A stretch of 44,007 nucleotides of DNA from Pelomyxa schiedti (lineage: Eukaryota > Protista > Evosea). The stretch is from positions 1 to 44,007 of the forward strand of contig JAHLWZ010000321.1 in NCBI GenBank assembly GCA_020536535.1. Reading direction: 5' to 3'. The notes under the pieces are model-generated. The model worked only from the letters and a program-made list of their open reading frames with translations. It was not told the DNA's origin and searched no databases. Positions 29,708 to 40,319 of the stretch are shown piece by piece (the first letter of the stretch is position 1; each line of letters starts with the position of its first letter). A program made the translations under genes and the position numbers.

Positions 29708-32700
29708 ATGGCGTGGAGGGAGCACCTTTTCAAATCACCTGTCGATTTGTTGGTGGAAAAGAGTTCAACAACATTAATTGACTTGTTGGACGAACCTGAT
29801 TTGCTTCAAGAATGCAAATATCCCAGTCAGAACCTAATTGACTTGTGTGTCTCTTTTTTTCTTTTTTTTTTTCCACCCATCAATTCATTTTGGTGACATT
29901 GCTCTACAATAAGTCTCACCCGACCAGAGCACTTACAAGCTTTATGCTTCTACATATCACAACCACAACCACAAACAGATGACAACACGGCCGTCAAGTA
30001 TCAGTTTCAAACTCTGGGGAACCTCTAACTTTATGTGAAGGTATCCTTACATAGCCTGTGAGATTCTATGTTCAGAGGTGGGACCCATCATTGACGCGCT
30101 GTTCAGACAACAGGAAAACACTAACTGTCCTGTGGAAAATGGGGAAAACAGTGGAAACGACCCTGTTTCTTCCTCATCAGGGGTCATGTCCCCCTTGGAT
30201 GCTGTATTCTCCTACGTAAGTGCAGAACCTCCCTTGCCTCTCGAACAGGCCAATTACTGTGCCCGAGTCTGCCAGACACTTCTGGCCAAGCGGACAACAG
30301 AGGTATGATCGTTTGTAATCTGCTATGGTTAACATGTGCACAGACCTTAGACTTTCTCAAAACAAAACGAGATTTTGTTCCCAATGTTGTTCGAAATCTC
30401 AGTCATCCAGCCACACTGGAGTTCCTTATCAAAATCATCAGACTTGAAGAGAGTCCGGAATCTTGTGGCGCAGTTCAGGTAGAACTTATATTGAAACCAA
30501 TTTTCCAATGCCTATCCAGTGGCTGTGTGATTGCTCCTTGGTTGACAATATTGTGTCACTTTTCCACCCCCAACAACCACTCGAGGTATCTACTTTTTTT
30601 CCCCTTCATAGAACTCAAACATTTGTAGGTCTTTGAGATTGCGTCACAAGCACTCACTGACATCATTGTCGCAGCTTCAAATGCCTCCTCACCATCTTTG
30701 ATAATTTATCAGGTATGGAATTAGAGCTTTAATCTGGTTGTTTATGAAAACCAGCTACAAACTGATGATGTTGCTGCTAAATACTTTGAGTACTTGATGT
30801 GCGAGCAGGTATGTCTCTTTCTTTTTGGAAAAAAATTCATTTCTATAAGGCTCCATCCGCAAGTTTAACCTATGGGTTGCCTCCAATGACACTTCTATTT
30901 ACTCTGCTGTCAGCAACTTCTTTGGAAACAACAACACCATTAAATGACCTTCCAGGTCTGTTTCATACGGTAATTGGATATTTCCCAAGGTTACAATACC
31001 TCCTCATTGGATCACACTAACCAGAAATAGGTTCAGCGAACTTTTACGAAAAGATATATTTCCCCCAGTAACTTCGAATACCACAAGTTCCGATTGCCCA
31101 CAGGTACTTTCTGAGACTTTTCCAAATACTGAGCAAATCTTAGGATCCTAATTCTACCACTCAACCTCCTGAGACTTCCTCAACCACTGAGATTTCAGAA
31201 GCATCCACATCGTCAGTATCTGCTGCATCTGCTTCATCGGCGTCTGTGTCCTCAGCCTCAGCCTCAGCCTCAGCCTCAGCCTCAGCAGAGCAAGAACAAG
31301 CATCCTCTGTAGCTCCTCCACTCGGCTTAAGCAAACTCAAGATCTGTGAATTCATTTGTGCATTCTTCAAAACCAACTTTTCTTGTGTCATGGATACTTT
31401 CATTCAGTCACCTATCATTCCTACAATACTCGTAAAACCGTCAGTTACATAACTCCTTCTAACTTGAGGCAGGACCTATTCTTTAAATACCCCTGGCATT
31501 CTCTGCTTCACTTTGTCATTGATGATTTGTTGGCTGGGCTTTTTGTTGCTCAACATGCTGCTCTGTTAACGCATGTATGTTATGTTAATGTAAAGGAATA
31601 AATCAAAACACACCTAGATTTTCTCGGAAACAAGCTTCCTGAGAAATATTGTGCAAGCAGAAAATGAAAGTTTCGTTGAACAGTACTTTTCTCACGCTAC
31701 TGCGCGATTTTCCTAAAAGAAATAAGACAAACAACGGGGTTTTCCAGAGGCTATGTGGGAACTCTTTCGAAGATTTCTGCCGCGATAAATCATCTAGTCG
31801 AACCTGAATATTGCGAAATTGCATCCACAATTTCTCAAATTCTTGCAGGTATTGTTATTTCGAATTCTTCGGAAACCAACACTCAAAAGACACTCCCGGG
31901 TGGCCTGAATACACACAGGGTATTCTTGCACAACGACTGGCGAGAGAAAGTGGCCTATTGGGTGGAAAGCGACCTGTTCCTCTCCCACGTGCGTTTTCCT
32001 CCTCACTGTTTCGGAAAACTCATAAATAATCAACAGCCAACCGTATTGACGAAAACGGAGCAGTAATACCACTACCCCCCGAAAGTAACAATAACGACAC
32101 AGGCTCACCAAATATGACCTCACCTAATCCCTATGACACCAATGATGGCCAGTATGCCATACCTATTTCTTTTCCTTAACTAACAATTCCCCAGATTTGA
32201 TGATTCACCCGTTGACTCCCTACTTCTTCATATTCCCTCTAACACTTGCCCAGGCTGAGTTTGTTAGTTTCGATCAAATTATTTTTGATCAGCAGCGGGA
32301 AGATCTAAATCACGATCCAGACCAATCCAATGATATTTGTGATGAATTCCAACCACACTTTATGCCAAATAGGCATGAGCTATATCAACTTCCACCAGAT
32401 TCAACCGAAGGTGAATCTGAGGTTCCTGTTGTTGTTGGTGGGAGGCTTGAGCTTCCAGCTCCTGTGGAAATCTCCACAAACCTAACGCTAGATCCGAGCT
32501 TCTTGGACGGTGGATTCCAAGATGTATGCGCCGCTTCAATTGCTGTAGTTTGATAATATCTAGGTCCCGTTACATGAAAATGAGCACAATGAAGCTCCAC
32601 TGCAATCTGTACCATCCACTACAACCCCAATCACCACAAGTGAACCACAAAATAATGAAGCCGACACCAAGCCGGAAGAACCCAAGACCGAAGAAAGCAA

Positions 32701-33193
32701 ACCTGAGATTCCGCCTGTATCTGTATCCAATACTGCCACTGTACCCGTGGAGGAGAAATCCTCCACCTCGGTAATCCCTACTCCCCCACTTCAAACCATA
32801 GAATCCACTCACTCCCCACAGAACAACAGTGACAGCAACAACAGTCCCACCGACAACAGCAACAACAGTAACAACAACAGCACACAAAGTGACAAAACCT
32901 CTCCCAGCAAACGAGCACCAACACCCTTCCCACAAGCCGATTCGCCGCAACCACAACCCGTTCCCAACCCGGACCTACTCAAACTAGCCACAGATACCAC
33001 AACAGCACCCACAACACCAACAACCACAACAACACCACTCACAACATCCACACCAGCAGTAACACCCACACCCACACCCACAACCACAGAGCCACCATCA
33101 CCACCCTCACCACAAATAACACCGGAACCGGAACCAGAACCCAAACCTATCTCCACAGATACTACAACCGAATCCCAGGGTTCTAACAGCTAG
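29708..33193 (+). CDS. SAPS-domain PP6/SIT4 phosphatase regulatory subunit (multi-exon)
   Basis: TLIDLLDEPDLLQECK, YPYIACEIL, LGLSKLKICEF, DLFFKYPWHSLLH, GYVGTLSKIS; acidic and P/T-rich tail; (TCAGCC)n microsatellite near 31250. Confidence 0.88.
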
Positions 33194-33419: not shown

Positions 33420-33519
33420 NNNNNNNNNNNNNNNNNNNNNNNNNNNNNNNNNNNNNNNNNNNNNNNNNNNNNNNNNNNNNNNNNNNNNNNNNNNNNNNNN
33501 NNNNNNNNNNNNNNNNNNN
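33420..33519. other. Assembly gap (100 N)
   Basis: N run; may hide a first exon of the next gene. Confidence 1.
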
Positions 33520-33582
33520 TTTCCTTTGACTACAGAAATTCACCACGACTGGACTCGGGTGGAGAAAAAAAAGCGCTGGAAA

Positions 33583-36500
33583 ATGGACCCAAGCAATCAC
33601 AGCATCAGCCGTAACAATACCTGCACAAATGGTATCACGAAGCACTGTATCACATCTGGCGATAATGTCGCACGCAATCACACCCAAAGCAATCAGGGTG
33701 CCGGTGGCTACAACAACGAGCAGCAGAGTGACGGGGATAATGAAGCTGAAAACGTGACTTTGGTTGATGGAGGCGAGGATGCTGTTACTTCCGGGGATGA
33801 TTATCTGTCATACGACTCGAGAAACGGCGCGAGGACCACGTCTCCAACTTACCAAACAAATATGAGTAATTCCATGTACAATCTCGCACCGCCAATGCAT
33901 CGTGCCCCTCTACCACAACAGACAGATCCATACGGTGGGATGTACGTGAACAGCATGCAGCCTCCATCACATCCCCCTCACGTTTTCCATACCCAACAGC
34001 AGTCATTTCAACAGCAATCTCCCCCTCCCGTGACTCAAAGGATATCCAACTATGTCAGTGATATAATTGATCTGCTGTGTGAGGTTACATGTGAAAACCA
34101 AATTATGCATCTGACCTTTACTAGTTCCCAAAAGAGGGAGTGCGATTGGAAGACGTTGCTGCCCTGTTCGCAGCAAAGTACAGGAGAAGAATGTATCCAC
34201 ACAGGTAGAAATAATTAATAGTCCCGCTTGAGCATTGTATTAAGAGATGTAGGGCTGGGCAACTGGTGAAGACCCACCCGGATCTGTTCCACACCACTGT
34301 TGCCGCAACGCCCACGTTTTATGGTGTACCTGAGACCAAACTGGTACTTTACAACTGGGCTCCTTCTGATATCCCTGGTAAGAAGATGCTACCTATGCTA
34401 CAGCTAATCTTCTTCGCCAGACGCTTCAGTTCCGTACCGTGCTCAGTACTACAGGTACTCAGCACTCATTCGAGTTTCAACTCACTATCTCTATGTAGCA
34501 GTACACTGCAGCATGACATTGGTGCTGCTTTGCTGGAGTTTCTCAAGCAAAGGACTGAGGGCGTACCCCTTTATCAACTTCACGAAGAATTTTGCCTTGG
34601 TGAGTACATCTGTGCATACGAGTTGTTAACATAACGCAGCTACCGGCAACGTTTTGCCTACTGCGCGCCTCAGAATCAAAGGTGTTGTAGCCAAGCTAAG
34701 AGATATTCAGCTCGACCCATTGGACAAACTGTTCAGGTAACTTTGCTGAGACACCCTAATTCTAACTCGTTTAGGTGCTGCTACAAACCGAGATCCAATG
34801 GCATTTCAACTACCTACCACACTAGTGGGAGCAATTCGAGCCCTTTACCACCAACCAATATCAATACAAGCAATAATTCTCTAAGCTGCGCCACAAACGG
34901 AAGTACACCGGCAAAAAGTGCTCCTATTCCTATCCCCACCCACCAGGTATTGCCTCAACAGTCCAGTTATGCCCTTCCTAGCCAATTCGCTCCTTCACCG
35001 GCCGTTCGTAATGTCCCGTTTAATTCTGGTGCCACGTCATCCACGCTCACTTGCTCTTCTCCTGGTGAGGGTCAATACATCTACCAAACTAGTGCTGCAG
35101 AATACCTCCCAATAGTGAGGGATCCCAAAATTTTAGCCAACATACGGTATGAATTCTTGCATATTCAGTGGGGCCTCTGAAATATGTACAGGTCGCTGTT
35201 GGAGGCTGCTGGGGGAGAGCTTGCTCTATGTGGTACCTTTCTTCCCTCTTTGGCGTGACATATCAATATTTTCCAGATTTGAGACTTGCGTACAAACAGC
35301 GTTATTCAAATCAAGATCTCAATCTTCCTTGTCCTATTATCAGATATCTTGAAGTGAGTTTTAAATCCTTAACAATCCCTAATATACAATCAGGAGGATC
35401 CCTATATTGGCATTGTGATGCGGAATAATTCTCATGCTGTTGCGTATTTGAGGTAGAGACTATTCACTTGCCTTCTTGTGCACTTATTATGCACAGATCT
35501 TATACCGAAGTGCAGCAATTCATCGCCAACAGCGAAGCCTCAAAGGGCACAGAGTCCGCTAGTTCCAACCAGCCAGATGGCACAGCCGGAGCTTCAACTG
35601 TAAAGCCATCAGTTTCCTATGCCAGTGTATGCAAGGGTACTTCCCCTGACAGCGGACAACGTGTAACGTCCCAAGAGGTCTGACCCTTTTCCTGCCAATT
35701 TTGTTCATCATTGACATAGATACCACAGTACCTGTGTTATGTCTGCAATAAAACTCTTCGTGATCCTGTTACCTTTGCTGGTTGTTACCACACAATATGC
35801 CAAAAATGTGCCTTCAGTCAGTTCTTGACAAATGTAATTACTGTAAAACTTCTCGTGAACTAATTCCTCTAGGAGCAACCATACATCTTATGTGGGCTTG
35901 GATGTGGTATTTATCATATGTCCTCGGCCTTCTCTTTGACCCCTTATAGGTTGTTCAATGACAAGGTCACAGGCGTCACAAATCAATGTCGCTTTGCAAC
36001 AGCAACTAAAACAACATGCACCATCAACTCAAGAAGCTCCGCCTTCAGCTGCACCTTCAGTTCCACCTTCAGAGTCCGCCGATATGTGTAGTTCTCCAGG
36101 CTGCAAGTTTGCATATCGTTATTCACTCATTCTTCTTAACTTGCCCGTGCAGACAAGTCGGCGTTGTTTTGTGCAGTGGATGCAATTGCCTGTGGTGTTC
36201 ACATCACAACTCGGTTATACACAGGTAATTAAATCCCAGTTGATGTAACTCACCCTTGGTACAGTCTGCTTCCATCGAACGTTCTCGTGAACCATCATAG
36301 GACAACTCCTGCTCCCCCTCAAACTCCCACCCCCAGTCTCCCTAGTGTGCAGCAATCTGCCACTTGTACCATTCATACTTCCGAGAAACGCACTTTCTGT
36401 TGCACAACATGCCCAGATTTACCCCTGATTTGCAGGTGAAAATTTGAGTAATGAATTCCTGATGTCCAACCAAATTGTAGCCATTGCTTACTTATAGGAG

Positions 36501-38624
36501 CTCACAAGGGTCACTCGTGTCTCTCATTTGAAGATGCCAAACCCCACTTTGATGTATGTCTCCACTTGGGTATATTTCTTGTTCCTTCTAATCAAGCAAA
36601 GGAAATGCTTGGGAAAGATAGTGCGGAGCTGAATACCAAGTTGAGAGAATTTAAGGTACATTCTGTCTTCTATTATCTCCTAAAAAGTATTTAACCACTG
36701 TTAAGGATTTCCGATCAAAGGTCTATCTGCCTCGTTTAATTTGAAATTGTAACTAAATGCACCGCAGATTCTCAAAGTAAAGAATGATTTGATGTACAAT
36801 GAAGTCAAGCAATGCTCTACTGTGTCCTCAAAAGTAAACCCTGTTGCACCAATTTTAAACTAAAACCACGATTACAGGTTTCAGCTCTGCATAAACTGCT
36901 TTCCGCAAAAGAAGAGGAACTTCTTGGTAGGAAAATACTCTTAAAACAAACACAACTAAATGCGGAAAGGATTCGTGCATACCGTTTTCCAGAAGAAAAC
37001 CAAGTCTCTTGATAACCAAATCAAGCAAGTTTCATCCTGGGCATCCACAGTTACTTCTGGGGTATTTATCCATCGTAGTACTTAACGCACTGACACTCTT
37101 AAGCTGGAGGCTTGCAACAATGCTGAAAACTACACACAGCAAGATAGCGGAAATTTCATGTGGCAAGCAACAGAGGCAATGAAAGCTGCATCCACCGTCA
37201 GATGTGCACCACGGCTCGAGGTAGGAGCCTCGAATGACTTCTCATACTCACTGTCCTCCACATTGCCAATTGGTAGTTTTCCTCGATTCCCTTGAAGTTC
37301 TTCTGACGCTTTCTCACAGAGCAGACCGTGCAACAGCTACAATTCTTCGACACAGCGGCACCCTCGCAACCCACATCCCAGATAACAGCCTCTTCTACGT
37401 CGACATGCACCGCTGCCTCAAACGCACCCTGCGCCGCTTCGATTCTGAGAACTCCATTTGATATGCAATTCAGAGGCTGGGACGAAGCACAGCAGTCCTT
37501 CTTTTCCTTTGGATTCCCAGCCATGCCCTCTTTGAACAACATCGTCGAGAAACAACAAACAATTCCACAGAATAACAGCAACGCCGCCAGCACAGGTTCC
37601 TCATCCGCCGCAGCTCCATCATCAACCCCTTCACCATCTCCATTCACCATTAATATCAATCCACCCCAGCCCACTACCATGACAATTAAGTCCATCACAA
37701 GGGTCTCTCCAAGGACAACTGTATCCGCCAAGCCAGCACCGACTTCAGCCTCTAGTTCAAATGTCGCACCAGCTAAACCGGCACAAGCAGGCACGTCTCG
37801 TCACTCTTATGCTAAGGATCTAACGTAACATAGAAACGCCTGACACAAAGAATGCTCCAACTTCCAAGTCTACTTCAAATAAGCAGAAAAGTCCTGATCA
37901 ACAAGTTAAATCAGACAGTGCTACACCCGCACCGCTGCCTCCTGGGGAAGTTATTTGGAAGGGAATAGTTCAGTCAGAGCAAGGCCCTTTTAGCTGCATA
38001 GGCTGCGCGCTACGCACCTCCGAAAAGTCGAACTCGAACTCTAACACTGTTGAGCTTCCCAAGGAGCTACGTGTAGATACTCTGTCACCCCTAGCAAGCC
38101 TCCCGTAAGTACCCACAATGTCCTACAACGTTCTAACCTTGGCTGTTTCTAGGCCCGATACCATTTCCGCCAACAGCATGTTTATTGAGCTTACTTGTGA
38201 CGTGTGTACCGCCTCATTCAGCGCCTTCCTTGCTCATCTGGTTACCAAAGGAGTGTAAGTAACCCCCGCAACACCTCCCAAGTACTAATTCACCGACAGA
38301 GTTGCACACACCAGCCACCCCGGAACAATGCTACTAGCTATCCGTACCACAGAAGCTCTATCCCACACCAACGCAGCCGCCTGTGTCAAGTAAGCAAACA
38401 ACTAATCACGCCAACAAACAAACTAACGCAATCGGTACAGGAAAGCGATGTGCCTCCCTCCCACAGCGGGCTCCGCAACCGAAGCCAGTGGTGGACAGCT
38501 GCACCTTGTCATGTTAGTTGGCGCTACTGCCTCCGCCTCACAACCACCACCTCCCACTGCCGCACCCGTCGATCAAGACAAGCAAACAACCACTGCAACC
38601 AACAACAACGCAAGCACTGAGTGA
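33583..38624 (+). CDS. Multidomain protein: 3x LOTUS/OST-HTH-like, RING, B-box1, B-box2, coiled coil, SPOC-like
   Basis: Manual splicing. LOTUS-like: PKEGVRLEDVAALFAAKYRRRMYPH..GLGQLVKTHPDLF; LLEFLKQRTEGVPLYQLHEEFCL; LLEAAGGELALCDLRLAYKQRY..IIRYLEEDP. RING: CYVC..DPVTFAGCYHTICQKC..CGLGC. B-box1: CSSPGC..VLCSGCNCLWCSHHNSVIH. B-box2: CTIHTSEKRTFCCTTC..ICSHCLLIGAHKGH. SPOC-like: VIWKGIV..LPKELRV..FSAFLAHLVTKG. Confidence 0.75.
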
Positions 38625-38702
38625 AGAGAGGTGAAGTAAAATAGTATGAGCTGTGTTTTAGAAAAAAATTTTTGGGAAGTAGGGTGACAGATAGGAGAGG
38701 TT

Positions 38703-40319
38703 TTAAATTGCAGCAGAGTGCTTATGTATGAGCTCAGTGATGGTGTTGGTGATAGTGGTTGGGTGTAAAACAGGAATCATGTAGGAGGGTGTGTCATCAG
38801 CCTATAGGAAAGTAAAAAAGAAGATTGGCTGGGGAGGAACTTACATGGATGACGGTTGCTGTGGGGTACTTGTGTTCATCGTAGGAGTCATTTTGCCCGA
38901 GTATGATGACTACATTAGATGGGACAGAGTCTGTTTCACTAATTTGGAACAGGTTAGGAAATCCGGAAACGGGGGAATGTTTCTTACTCCCGCATCATCT
39001 GTATTTCATTGGATGCCGTGTCATAAGTATTAGAGCGTGAAAGCATTATCTGTGCATAAAATGAACTTCATTGGAAAAGAAGAAAATGAGGGAAGCCGAC
39101 GAACCTGAGACAGCTGGGCATCATTTGCCGGGAGTTGTTTGAGCATAGGGGATAGCCTATGCTTTCCGGCCATCAACTGAAGTCTCACCAGTCCAAATTT
39201 TGTAAGTAACCGTTGAAACTTAAGAGTCCACAGCAAAGAACTTTCTTCAGGGCTTCCTATTGCCGGCACGTCTGGGGCAATAAGTACGGCCCCTGCGAAT
39301 TGAGTTGAGGGTATCTTGTTTGCAAAACTCCTGTATTAAAATATTTGGTATGAATTTGACGGTGATAGAGTGGCCTACATCGAAAAGAGTGACCCGTATT
39401 CCTGACCAACAACAATAAAACTGTCATGTTTCTCCATTCTGCTGTGCAACGCTTGGTGTAAATTGTTTGTGAAGACAGACAGCCTCTTTTCTTTGGATCC
39501 TTTTATTTGTGAATTATTCCCAATTATTTTATTTCTATGGATCCTATTNNNNNNNNNNNNNNNNNNNNNNNNNNNNNNNNNNNNNNNNNNNNNNNNNNNN
39601 NNNNNNNNNNNNNNNNNNNNNNNNNNNNNNNNNNNNNNNNNNNNNNNNGTTTCTCCATTCTGCTGTGCAACGCTTGGTGTAAATTGTTTGTGAAGACAGA
39701 CAGCCTCTTTTCTTTGGATCCTTTTATTTGTGAATTATTCCCAATTATTTTATTTCTATGGATCCTATTATATCACCTGATCGTGGAGAGAACCCGTAGC
39801 CCTCCCTGTCATATGAGCACGAAGCAATGCCCTCTCTTTGCAGTGATTCCTGCACAAGGACAAACACATTGTGTCCCTGCATCAAGCCACCCTCCAAAAT
39901 TACAAGGGGACCTCCCTCCGGGCCCACGCATTTCACGTGCAGTGCTTCACCAAAGTGTCCAGTACCTATCACTTGGCCAGAGGGTTTCAGTTTGGAATCC
40001 ACAAGGTGCCTCATAGCCAAATTAAACAGAGTAATAACCAGAAGAACCACTACCACACCCTATAAGCGTACGTCAGGATAAGGTTGTCCACTTTAGGCAG
40101 CTACTATGTAGGTAATACATAACATTTATTATAATCCCACTAACAATCAATGGAATACTATACCTCCAAAGTGTAGTCCAGCCCGACCCATAATCTCGAC
40201 GTCGGCTCGTGGAGCTTTTTCTTGGGTTTTGACTTAGGAATCGTACTGCTAGAATTCGACGATGTCGACTTCGATGCAGGGGACTTGGTTTTGTTTGTGC
40301 GTCTTCTGCTCTTTTCCAT
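38703..40319 (-). CDS. Membrane-anchored alpha/beta-hydrolase fold protein, probably catalytically dead
   Basis: TM segment, then LHVKCVGPEGGPLVILEGG, CSYDREGYGFS, FIVVGQEYGS, GAVLIAP, PSYMIPVLHP..ITELI*. Confidence 0.82.
39549..39648. other. Assembly gap flanked by ~120-bp overlap duplicate (artefact)
   Basis: Sequence after the Ns repeats ~39428-39548. Confidence 0.9.

Follow-up and report, generated by a model that had tools for sequence, protein, structure and literature searches.

A heavily spliced Pelomyxa schiedti gene encoding a predicted TRIM-type ubiquitin ligase with a probable SPOC-like tail

Introduction

What kind of protein is encoded on the plus strand of Pelomyxa schiedti contig JAHLWZ010000321.1 between positions 33583 and 38624, and is it encoded by one gene at all? 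The contig belongs to NCBI GenBank assembly GCA_020536535.1, and the stretch of 44,007 nucleotides (nt) analysed here is called the window; all positions refer to it. A preliminary description, made from the bare sequence, had proposed a single gene in which three LOTUS (OST-HTH) domains are followed by a C3HC4 RING finger, two B-boxes, a coiled coil and a C-terminal SPOC domain, and had read the product as a candidate RNA-linked silencing ubiquitin ligase. Our follow-up leads to a partly different answer: the region is one real, heavily spliced gene, Pelo_4127, which, with a probability of about 0.6, encodes a TRIM-type E3 ubiquitin ligase whose tail is probably SPOC-like.

Outside animals only a TRIM37-like subfamily of TRIM proteins has been found, and the other TRIM subfamilies have been described as animal-specific (Marin 2012, PMC3503706). 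Most SPOC proteins are of the TLD-SPOC type (PHF3, DIDO, Bye1, SPOCD1) or the RRM-SPOC type (SPEN, RBM15, FPA), and the review describing them, in which the partners of SPOC are TFIIS-like or RRM domains, mentions no RING or ubiquitin ligase (PMC10111866). Fusions of OST-HTH to B-box, U-box and RING have been reported in several protist groups (Anantharaman et al. 2010, PMC2848206), thus the LOTUS-ligase part of the proposal would not be new even if it were true. What would be new, should it be borne out, is a TRIM scaffold that carries a SPOC-like tail, for which there is no earlier description.

Results

One gene with many short introns

In this eukaryotic stretch the open pieces are numerous, short and in changing frames. 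An exon-by-exon check of the reading frame yielded a model with an ATG at 33583, a stop codon at 38622–38624 and 28 exons with 1278 codons. The frame is kept across 27 introns, which are 38–57 nt long and typically GT-AG. NCBI already lists its product, under the name "hypothetical protein Pelo_4127 [Pelomyxa schiedti]", with 1214 amino acids (aa).

Contigs from four single-cell RNA runs of one study were placed on 33530–39100. They confirmed 13 introns between 36107 and 38440, three of which have the acceptor AAG instead of YAG. In one contig 17 A's follow position 38668, where the genome has seven; this non-templated A tail marks a transcript end on the plus strand. Contigs of a single run cover 36012–38668 almost without gaps, which places both B-box modules together with the helical region and the C-terminal domain in a single RNA. 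In the 5´ half another 13 introns were placed by GT..AG ends and a length of 38–57 nt, with a branch motif of the CTRAY kind and an unbroken frame as further guides. The proposal of one gene with short GT-AG introns is borne out, on the plus strand and with many short exons, by the continuous frame, the NCBI model, the 13 RNA junctions and the poly(A) tail, and we regard the single-gene reading as supported. The modules also lie where the preliminary description had placed them, within a few bases (first RING cysteine at 35735, B-box1 36087–36222, B-box2 36365–36514, C-terminal domain 37944–38522).

The NCBI model and ours agree everywhere except in two places, and both remove the intron 37062–37103. 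NCBI takes out about 247 nt (34737–34983), whereas our model keeps an open exon 7 of 372 nt starting at 34775. No RNA cover of 34737–34983 was found among the contigs placed; we prefer our exon 7 because all other introns in the gene are 38–57 nt long. The second difference concerns the intron before the RING, where the NCBI choice (35678–35719, 42 nt) looks better than our 57-nt one. Residue numbers below are those of the 1214-aa NCBI record, and the searches used single exons or this record, which is shorter by the about 64 residues of our exon 7.

Two separate genes, one LOTUS-like and one TRIM, were also considered. No in-frame ATG is present in the RING exon, which lies about 40 nt past the preceding coding exon, making such a split unlikely. 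At the 5´ end, a scaffold gap of 100 N (33420–33519) ends 64 nt upstream of the ATG and the frame is open back to it, so that the protein may in reality start further 5´.

A TRIM core in the middle of the protein

The core of Pelo_4127, consisting of RING, B-box1-like module, B-box2 and predicted coiled coil, is solid. The RING has the pattern C-x2-C-x12-C-x-H-x2-C-x2-C-x14-C-x3-C-x-C and, over aa 485–545, passed three Pfam RING models (zf-C3HC4_2 with 27.5 bits at a cut-off of 27, zf-RING_UBOX with 25.3 at 25.2 and zf-C3HC4 with 25.0 at 21), confirming the C3HC4 finger proposed earlier. Exon-by-exon Pfam scans of 20 open pieces matched only the RING half-exon (exon 35720–35860 alone reaches 28 bits on zf-C3HC4_2) and, weakly, half a B-box. 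The RING starts at aa 491 of 1214, or at about 555 of 1278 in our model, and not at the N-terminus; the internal position of the TRIM core, already pointed out as unusual in the preliminary description, is therefore real in both models.

Between the RING and B-box2 lies a B-box1-like zinc module whose eight Cys/His ligands come from six cysteines and two to three histidines. The stretch comprising both boxes is 33–40% identical to other Pelomyxa TRIM-like genes and, in a PDB sequence search, weakly matches the B1-B2 tandem of MID1. B-box2 has the pattern C-x2-H-x8-C-x2-C-x6-C-x2-C-x5-H-x2-H, is located directly 5´ of the coiled coil and passes Pfam zf-B_box (28.9 bits against a cut-off of 24.1, aa 640–690). 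A phmmer search of the PDB with aa 485–860 found the B-box2 of MID2 (E 6e-4) and the B-box-coiled-coil part of TRIM3 over about 200 residues (E 1.7e-3), with further matches to MID1, TRIM72 and TIF1-beta.

For the coiled coil, two copies of aa 640–860 were folded with ESMFold2 in three runs, which gave a homodimer score of 0.67 compared to 0.00 for the best of three controls. Among proteins of solved structure, 21 of 30 homodimers and none of 23 monomers attain this mark (17 of 29 and 0 of 30 for eukaryotic proteins). At least 90% of the contacts were common to the runs, and the partner had a predicted local distance difference test score (pLDDT) of at least 83, with 84 in every run. The contacts with the lowest error (744-744, 740-751, 736-754, 729-758, 718-769 and 704-787) have a constant sum of about 1488–1491, which points to a coiled coil packed in antiparallel fashion around a dyad close to residue 744. 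In the predicted dimer, residues 828–855 fold back onto the coiled coil, which is the TRIM arrangement. The coiled coil of the earlier proposal is thus retained, and modelling predicts it to be an antiparallel homodimer.

The C-terminal domain resembles SPOC

Judged from its sequence, the C-terminal domain probably has a SPOC-type fold. A feature search of the ESM Atlas with aa 1034–1186 returned a SPOC cluster at the top, with 181 of 256 features in common and a score of 0.91, a value which, by the calibration of the tool, 4–10 of 100 shuffled proteins also reach; at least 170 shared features are seen for nine of ten true family members and for one to two of ten chance matches. SPOC accounted for 16 of the 30 feature matches and SPOC_AIPP2 for one more, and the ten best matches bearing a family all belong to the SPOC clan. 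Exon 25 (37836–38102) searched alone gave no usable match in the ESM Atlas.

A second line of evidence comes from the SPOC genes of the amoeba itself. A six-frame scan of the genome with PF07744 gave five matches at four loci (C857, C888, C757 and C644) and none at the domain in the window. In Smith-Waterman alignments, the SPOC exon of C757 (model positions 5–56) matched domain residues 7–55 with a score reached by 17 of 5000 shuffles (p 0.003), and that of C857 (positions 39–101) matched residues 44–96 with a score reached by 133 of 5000 (p 0.03). The two pieces align co-linearly, and when slid over the whole protein both peak at the C-terminal domain. The W-x-G start and an L-P-x-x-L segment of the domain align with these genuine SPOC exons. 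Taken together, the ESM features and the exon alignments suggest, with weak to moderate strength, a similarity to SPOC.

The C857 exon also aligns with the solved SPOC domain of Arabidopsis FPA, showing that the amoeba has ordinary SPOC proteins beside the divergent one of Pelo_4127. An arginine common to C857 and FPA faces a leucine in the Pelo_4127 domain in what is a weak alignment; it corresponds to the "highly conserved" R1248 of PHF3 and R3552 of SPEN (PMC10111866). The phosphoserine-binding arginine therefore seems to be absent from Pelo_4127, a tentative assignment. For SPOCD1 and TASOR it has been argued that their SPOC versions do not read phosphoserine (PMC10111866). A Pfam search for the usual partner domains TLD, PHD and RRM found no match anywhere in Pelo_4127, an NCBIfam search found none to the C-terminal domain, and a PDB sequence search with exon 25 returned nothing relevant.

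Table 1. Features of the Pelo_4127 locus (positions in the window; residue numbers of the NCBI record)
Feature	Position	Strand	Details
Whole gene	33583..38668	+	CDS 33583-38624, 3´ UTR to poly(A) site 38668, about 28 exons
N-terminal low-complexity region	33583..34041	+	aa 1-153, Q/S/N/P-rich, within exon 1
Candidate module L1	34042..34377	+	aa 154-229, predicted introns 34084-34124 and 34205-34252
Candidate module L2	34499..34736	+	aa 248-312, predicted intron 34600-34639; own model continues into exon 7 (34775)
Candidate module L3	35103..35452	+	aa 354-427, predicted introns 35147-35191, 35233-35276, 35354-35393
RING finger	35735..35954	+	aa 491-538, predicted introns 35834-35872 and 35907-35949
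B-box1-like zinc module	36087..36222	+	aa 582-612, RNA-confirmed intron 36107-36152 inside
B-box2	36365..36514	+	aa 647-681, intron 36436-36480 inside
Intron in B-box2	36436-36480	+	RNA contig stops at 36435, its loose end resumes at 36481
Predicted coiled-coil/helical region	36539..37357	+	aa about 690-855, nine exons, introns RNA-confirmed except 37062-37103
Micro-exon	36706-36720	+	15 nt, five codons; flanking introns RNA-confirmed
Intron with in-frame TAA	37062-37103	+	42 nt, GT..AAG, TAA at 37083-37085; removed in NCBI model
S/T/P/A-rich low-complexity linker	37358..37943	+	aa about 856-1036
GC-AG intron	37791-37833	+	RNA-confirmed; within the S/T/P/A-rich linker
Probable SPOC-like domain	37944..38522	+	aa 1037-1181, four exons, RNA-confirmed introns 38105-38152, 38255-38299, 38390-38440
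RNA-spliced introns, first part	36107-36152; 36225-36264; 36554-36601; 36656-36705; 36721-36767; 36834-36877	+	
RNA-spliced introns, second part	36927-36969; 37273-37319; 37791-37833; 38105-38152; 38255-38299; 38390-38440	+	
CDS, coding sequence; UTR, untranslated region.

The N-terminal arm and the proposed LOTUS repeats

The region upstream of the RING starts with a low-complexity part (aa 1–153), for which no family match was found, and contains the three stretches L1–L3 which had been described as LOTUS domains. The loose hydrophobic pattern behind that description is visible in their translations. A search with PF12872 (OST-HTH) found no match at E <= 10, neither with the whole protein nor with isolated pieces, and a six-frame scan of the genome with the same model gave no match in the window and no clear canonical LOTUS gene in this intron-rich genome. 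The sole genome-wide match (C769:33549-33626, 14.6 bits) was rejected as a false positive, since it falls within a gene resembling that of a class II fructose-bisphosphate aldolase. A PDB sequence search with the N-terminal region found no LOTUS chain.

As a control, we built an OST-HTH profile from 32 Bacteroidota domains. L1–L3 obtained negative bit scores against the hidden Markov model (HMM) made from them, and hhalign gave a probability of 0.1–1.6% against the bacterial domains, whether the stretches were used singly or aligned together (best L3, 1.6%). Pairwise local alignment placed the stretches at or below the shuffle mean in their similarity to each other (z -0.2, -1.0 and -0.7). AlphaFold2, run without an alignment on aa 150–432, returned a mean pLDDT of 33, too low for a usable model, and the genome contains no paralogue of the N-terminal extension. 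With the Pfam, PDB, 32-domain profile and mutual-similarity tests all negative, the identification of three LOTUS domains is not supported, and since it was the basis for calling the ligase RNA-linked, that part of the interpretation is not supported either. A LOTUS fold in L1–L3 as such is doubtful. The original call had rested on the hydrophobic pattern, and no statistical test backed it.

Inside exon 1, one contig of an RNA library skips 54 nt (33914–33967, 18 codons) in frame. The skipped segment has non-canonical ends (CA..AT), located between short direct repeats, and is not a normal intron; it could be an allelic deletion or a jump of the reverse transcriptase.

Relatives and genomic surroundings

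Pelo_4127 has many relatives in its scaffold and none that we found in its tail. A six-frame B-box scan of the 52-Mb genome yielded 309 candidates, with at least 150 matches exceeding the cut-off of Pfam, and the nearest paralogous TRIM-like cores are 29–40% identical. No paralogue of the C-terminal domain was found in the genome, and the gene itself occurs as a single copy outside any tandem cluster. It therefore belongs, as a divergent member, to a very large amoebal expansion of B-box/TRIM-like genes.

An exhaustive HMMER search of 1.84 billion representative proteins with exon 25 found Pelo_4127 itself, 100% identical over the exon. Four other matches were proteins with Ig repeats or C2H2 zinc fingers, which we take as noise. 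Word-index searches with aa 150–430, 485–800 and 1030–1200, which were limited by the length window of the tool, returned the protein itself or nothing.

The upstream neighbour, on the plus strand at 30305–33193, matches SAPS (SIT4 phosphatase-associated; regulatory subunit of PP6) and ends in a T/P/S-rich tail (32747–33193). A convergent gene on the minus strand (38638–39052) has introns at 38801–38843 and 38939–38987, seen as CT..AC on the plus strand; its RNA contigs reach 38638 and overlap the 3´ UTR of Pelo_4127 (38625–38668).

Discussion

Strengths and weaknesses of the reading as one TRIM-type ligase gene

The reading of Pelo_4127 as a single gene for a TRIM-type ligase with a SPOC-like tail has to be weighed against a number of results that speak against it. 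As to the transcript, the joined and spliced RNA from 36012 to 38668 answers the question of a single messenger for the 3´ part only: no spliced RNA over 33583–36011 was found among the contigs placed, and the lone contig of the 5´ half (33798–34370), which covers 33968–34370 at L1, shows no splicing at two predicted introns and may stem from DNA or pre-mRNA. In addition, the only RNA contig crossing 37062–37103 keeps this segment. In the core, the last zinc pair of the RING is C-x3-C-x-C and not the standard C-x2-C, and it depends on two predicted introns. Pfam calls the proposed second B-box, B-box2, but not B-box1 (aa 582–612), although the latter is in the right place, rich in cysteine and histidine and homologous to the B1-B2 stretches of other Pelomyxa genes. 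The success of the dimer prediction may partly reflect a memory of solved TRIM dimers in ESMFold2, so it indicates likeness and not binding.

Further points of this kind concern the tail. Apart from the fraction of shuffled proteins that reach the same ESM score, neither Pfam SPOC (PF07744) nor SPOC_AIPP2 (PF23121) matched the domain at E <= 10, and the PDB sequence search with it found no SPOC chain. AlphaFold2 without an alignment modelled aa 1030–1190 at an unusably low pLDDT of 36, and Foldseek and VIA searches with this model returned noise. The SPOC domain of the preliminary description is therefore best called SPOC-like, a term that the ESM features and the weak co-linear similarity to exons of the same genome allow and that the missing Pfam match limits.

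Alternative readings

These negatives lend themselves to another explanation, namely that the C-terminal domain is an orphan fold specific to this lineage and that the protein is a TRIM-like ligase with a tail unrelated to SPOC. All HMM and sequence searches for SPOC were negative, no relative other than the protein itself turned up among the 1.84 billion representatives or in the word searches, the domain has no paralogue in its own genome and the conserved arginine fails to align. On the other hand, two independent weak signals agree on SPOC, the ESM features and the co-linear similarity to two canonical exons, the latter exactly at the domain, and an orphan fold is in our view unlikely, if not by a wide measure. 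Considerably less probable is a shorter main product. If the mature mRNA kept the TAA at 37083, the protein would have about 790 aa and end in the coiled coil, and only a minor spliced form or translation from an internal start would yield the SPOC-like part. This would fit the sole contig across the segment, in which it is kept and every other intron has been removed, as well as the template-switch oligo sequence marking cDNA 5´ ends at 36012 and 37754 and an in-frame ATG at 36084, just 5´ of B-box1. The segment however has the look of a typical intron of the gene: it is 42 nt long, with GTATTT as donor, CTGAC as a motif resembling a branch site and the AAG acceptor found in three RNA-confirmed introns. 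Beyond 37103 about 430 codons follow in open frame over five confirmed introns, the NCBI annotation splices the segment out, and the RNA contigs display only the commonest form. Because of its usual intron features, the NCBI removal and the open codons downstream, we read the contig as a case of intron retention. The two internal cDNA ends were each seen in one contig with the oligo sequence directly 5´, and the genome has no GGG upstream of them; RNA fragments explain them equally well, and a RING-less isoform starting at the ATG at 36084 is conceivable.

A further alternative is the original one, in which three LOTUS domains serve to bring in RNA or a Vasa-type helicase, nearby proteins are ubiquitinated by the TRIM core and SPOC ties the complex to RNA polymerase II (Pol II) or chromatin. 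It can draw on the hydrophobic pattern of L1–L3, on the hhalign register of L3, which against bacterial OST-HTH is as expected (P 0.03 for a single comparison), and on the OST-HTH fusions to B-box and RING ligase domains in other protists (PMC2848206). Moreover, the LOTUS domains of C. elegans MIP-1/2 are likewise missed by simple profile searches (PMC8331183). Piwi-domain matches were found at no fewer than four loci of the genome (C803, C249, C877 and C848; best E 3e-40), indicating that P. schiedti has small-RNA machinery of the Argonaute/Piwi type, but nothing ties these loci to Pelo_4127. Against it stand the absence of PF12872 and PDB matches, the negative scores and low hhalign probabilities against the bacterial domains, the lack of similarity among the three stretches beyond that of shuffled sequence and the low-confidence AlphaFold model. 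As the SPOC arginine has probably been lost, a reading of the phosphorylated Pol II C-terminal domain (CTD) is disfavoured too. We consider this complete scheme distinctly unlikely, and a role of Pelo_4127 in silencing or against transposons, drawn from domain analogies, is speculative.

How the protein might work

Pelo_4127, read as a TRIM-type ligase with a SPOC-like tail, has predicted ubiquitin ligase activity. The coiled-coil dimer would present two RINGs for the binding of ubiquitin-loaded E2 and two C-terminal domains for the capture of targets. The target-binding end would probably be the divergent, beta-rich SPOC-like domain, which would more likely be a plain docking module for other proteins, as has been proposed for SPOCD1 and TASOR, than a phospho-reader of the Pol II CTD. 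The approximately 490 residues before the RING contain low-complexity sequence and three stretches of about 70–80 residues each.

A bolder version is that Pelo_4127 founds a new class of TRIM proteins, a dimeric ligase that docks via a genuine SPOC fold, possibly helped by winged helices in front of the RING, on the machinery for transcription or RNA processing and ubiquitinates it. By analogy, it would then correspond, in a protist, to the TIF1 TRIMs that read chromatin, but with a different reader. Both the class and the analogy seem rather improbable to us at present.

Comparison with known systems

Compared to animal TRIM (RBCC) proteins, of which TRIM3 and MID1/MID2 are nearest by sequence, Pelo_4127 has the same order of modules with normal spacing, an antiparallel dimer with later helices packing back on its centre is predicted for it as well, and a variable C-terminal module is the presumed target binder in both. 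By its logic it would be nearest to the TIF1-type proteins TRIM24/28/33 with their chromatin-reader tails. It differs from animal TRIM proteins in the position of the RING near residue 491, the odd last zinc pair, a B-box1 missed by Pfam and a SPOC-like tail, something no TRIM class has. RING, two B-boxes and coiled coil also make up the scaffold of other TRIM-like genes in Pelomyxa, to which Pelo_4127 adds the long extension before the RING.

With SPOC proteins it has in common a C-terminal domain of about 145 residues whose ESM features are nearest to SPOC clusters; unlike them, it has neither a TLD, PHD or RRM partner nor a Pfam SPOC match. With a leucine aligned to the conserved arginine of PHF3 and SPEN, it seems to resemble in this respect the SPOCD1 and TASOR versions, argued not to read phosphoserine. 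The OST-HTH fusions of the ubiquitin system (PMC2848206) differ from it in that Pelo_4127 has no OST-HTH support from profiles, structure or repeats.

Two-B-box coiled-coil TRIM ligases have so far been treated as an animal invention (PMC3503706), and the host of Pelo_4127 is an amoebozoan. If the reading is true, SPOC would gain a new partner, direct ubiquitin ligase activity, and TRIM proteins a new tail, both in an anaerobic amoeba. This would support the view that the TRIM scaffold is, also outside animals, a plug-in platform for many different binding modules.

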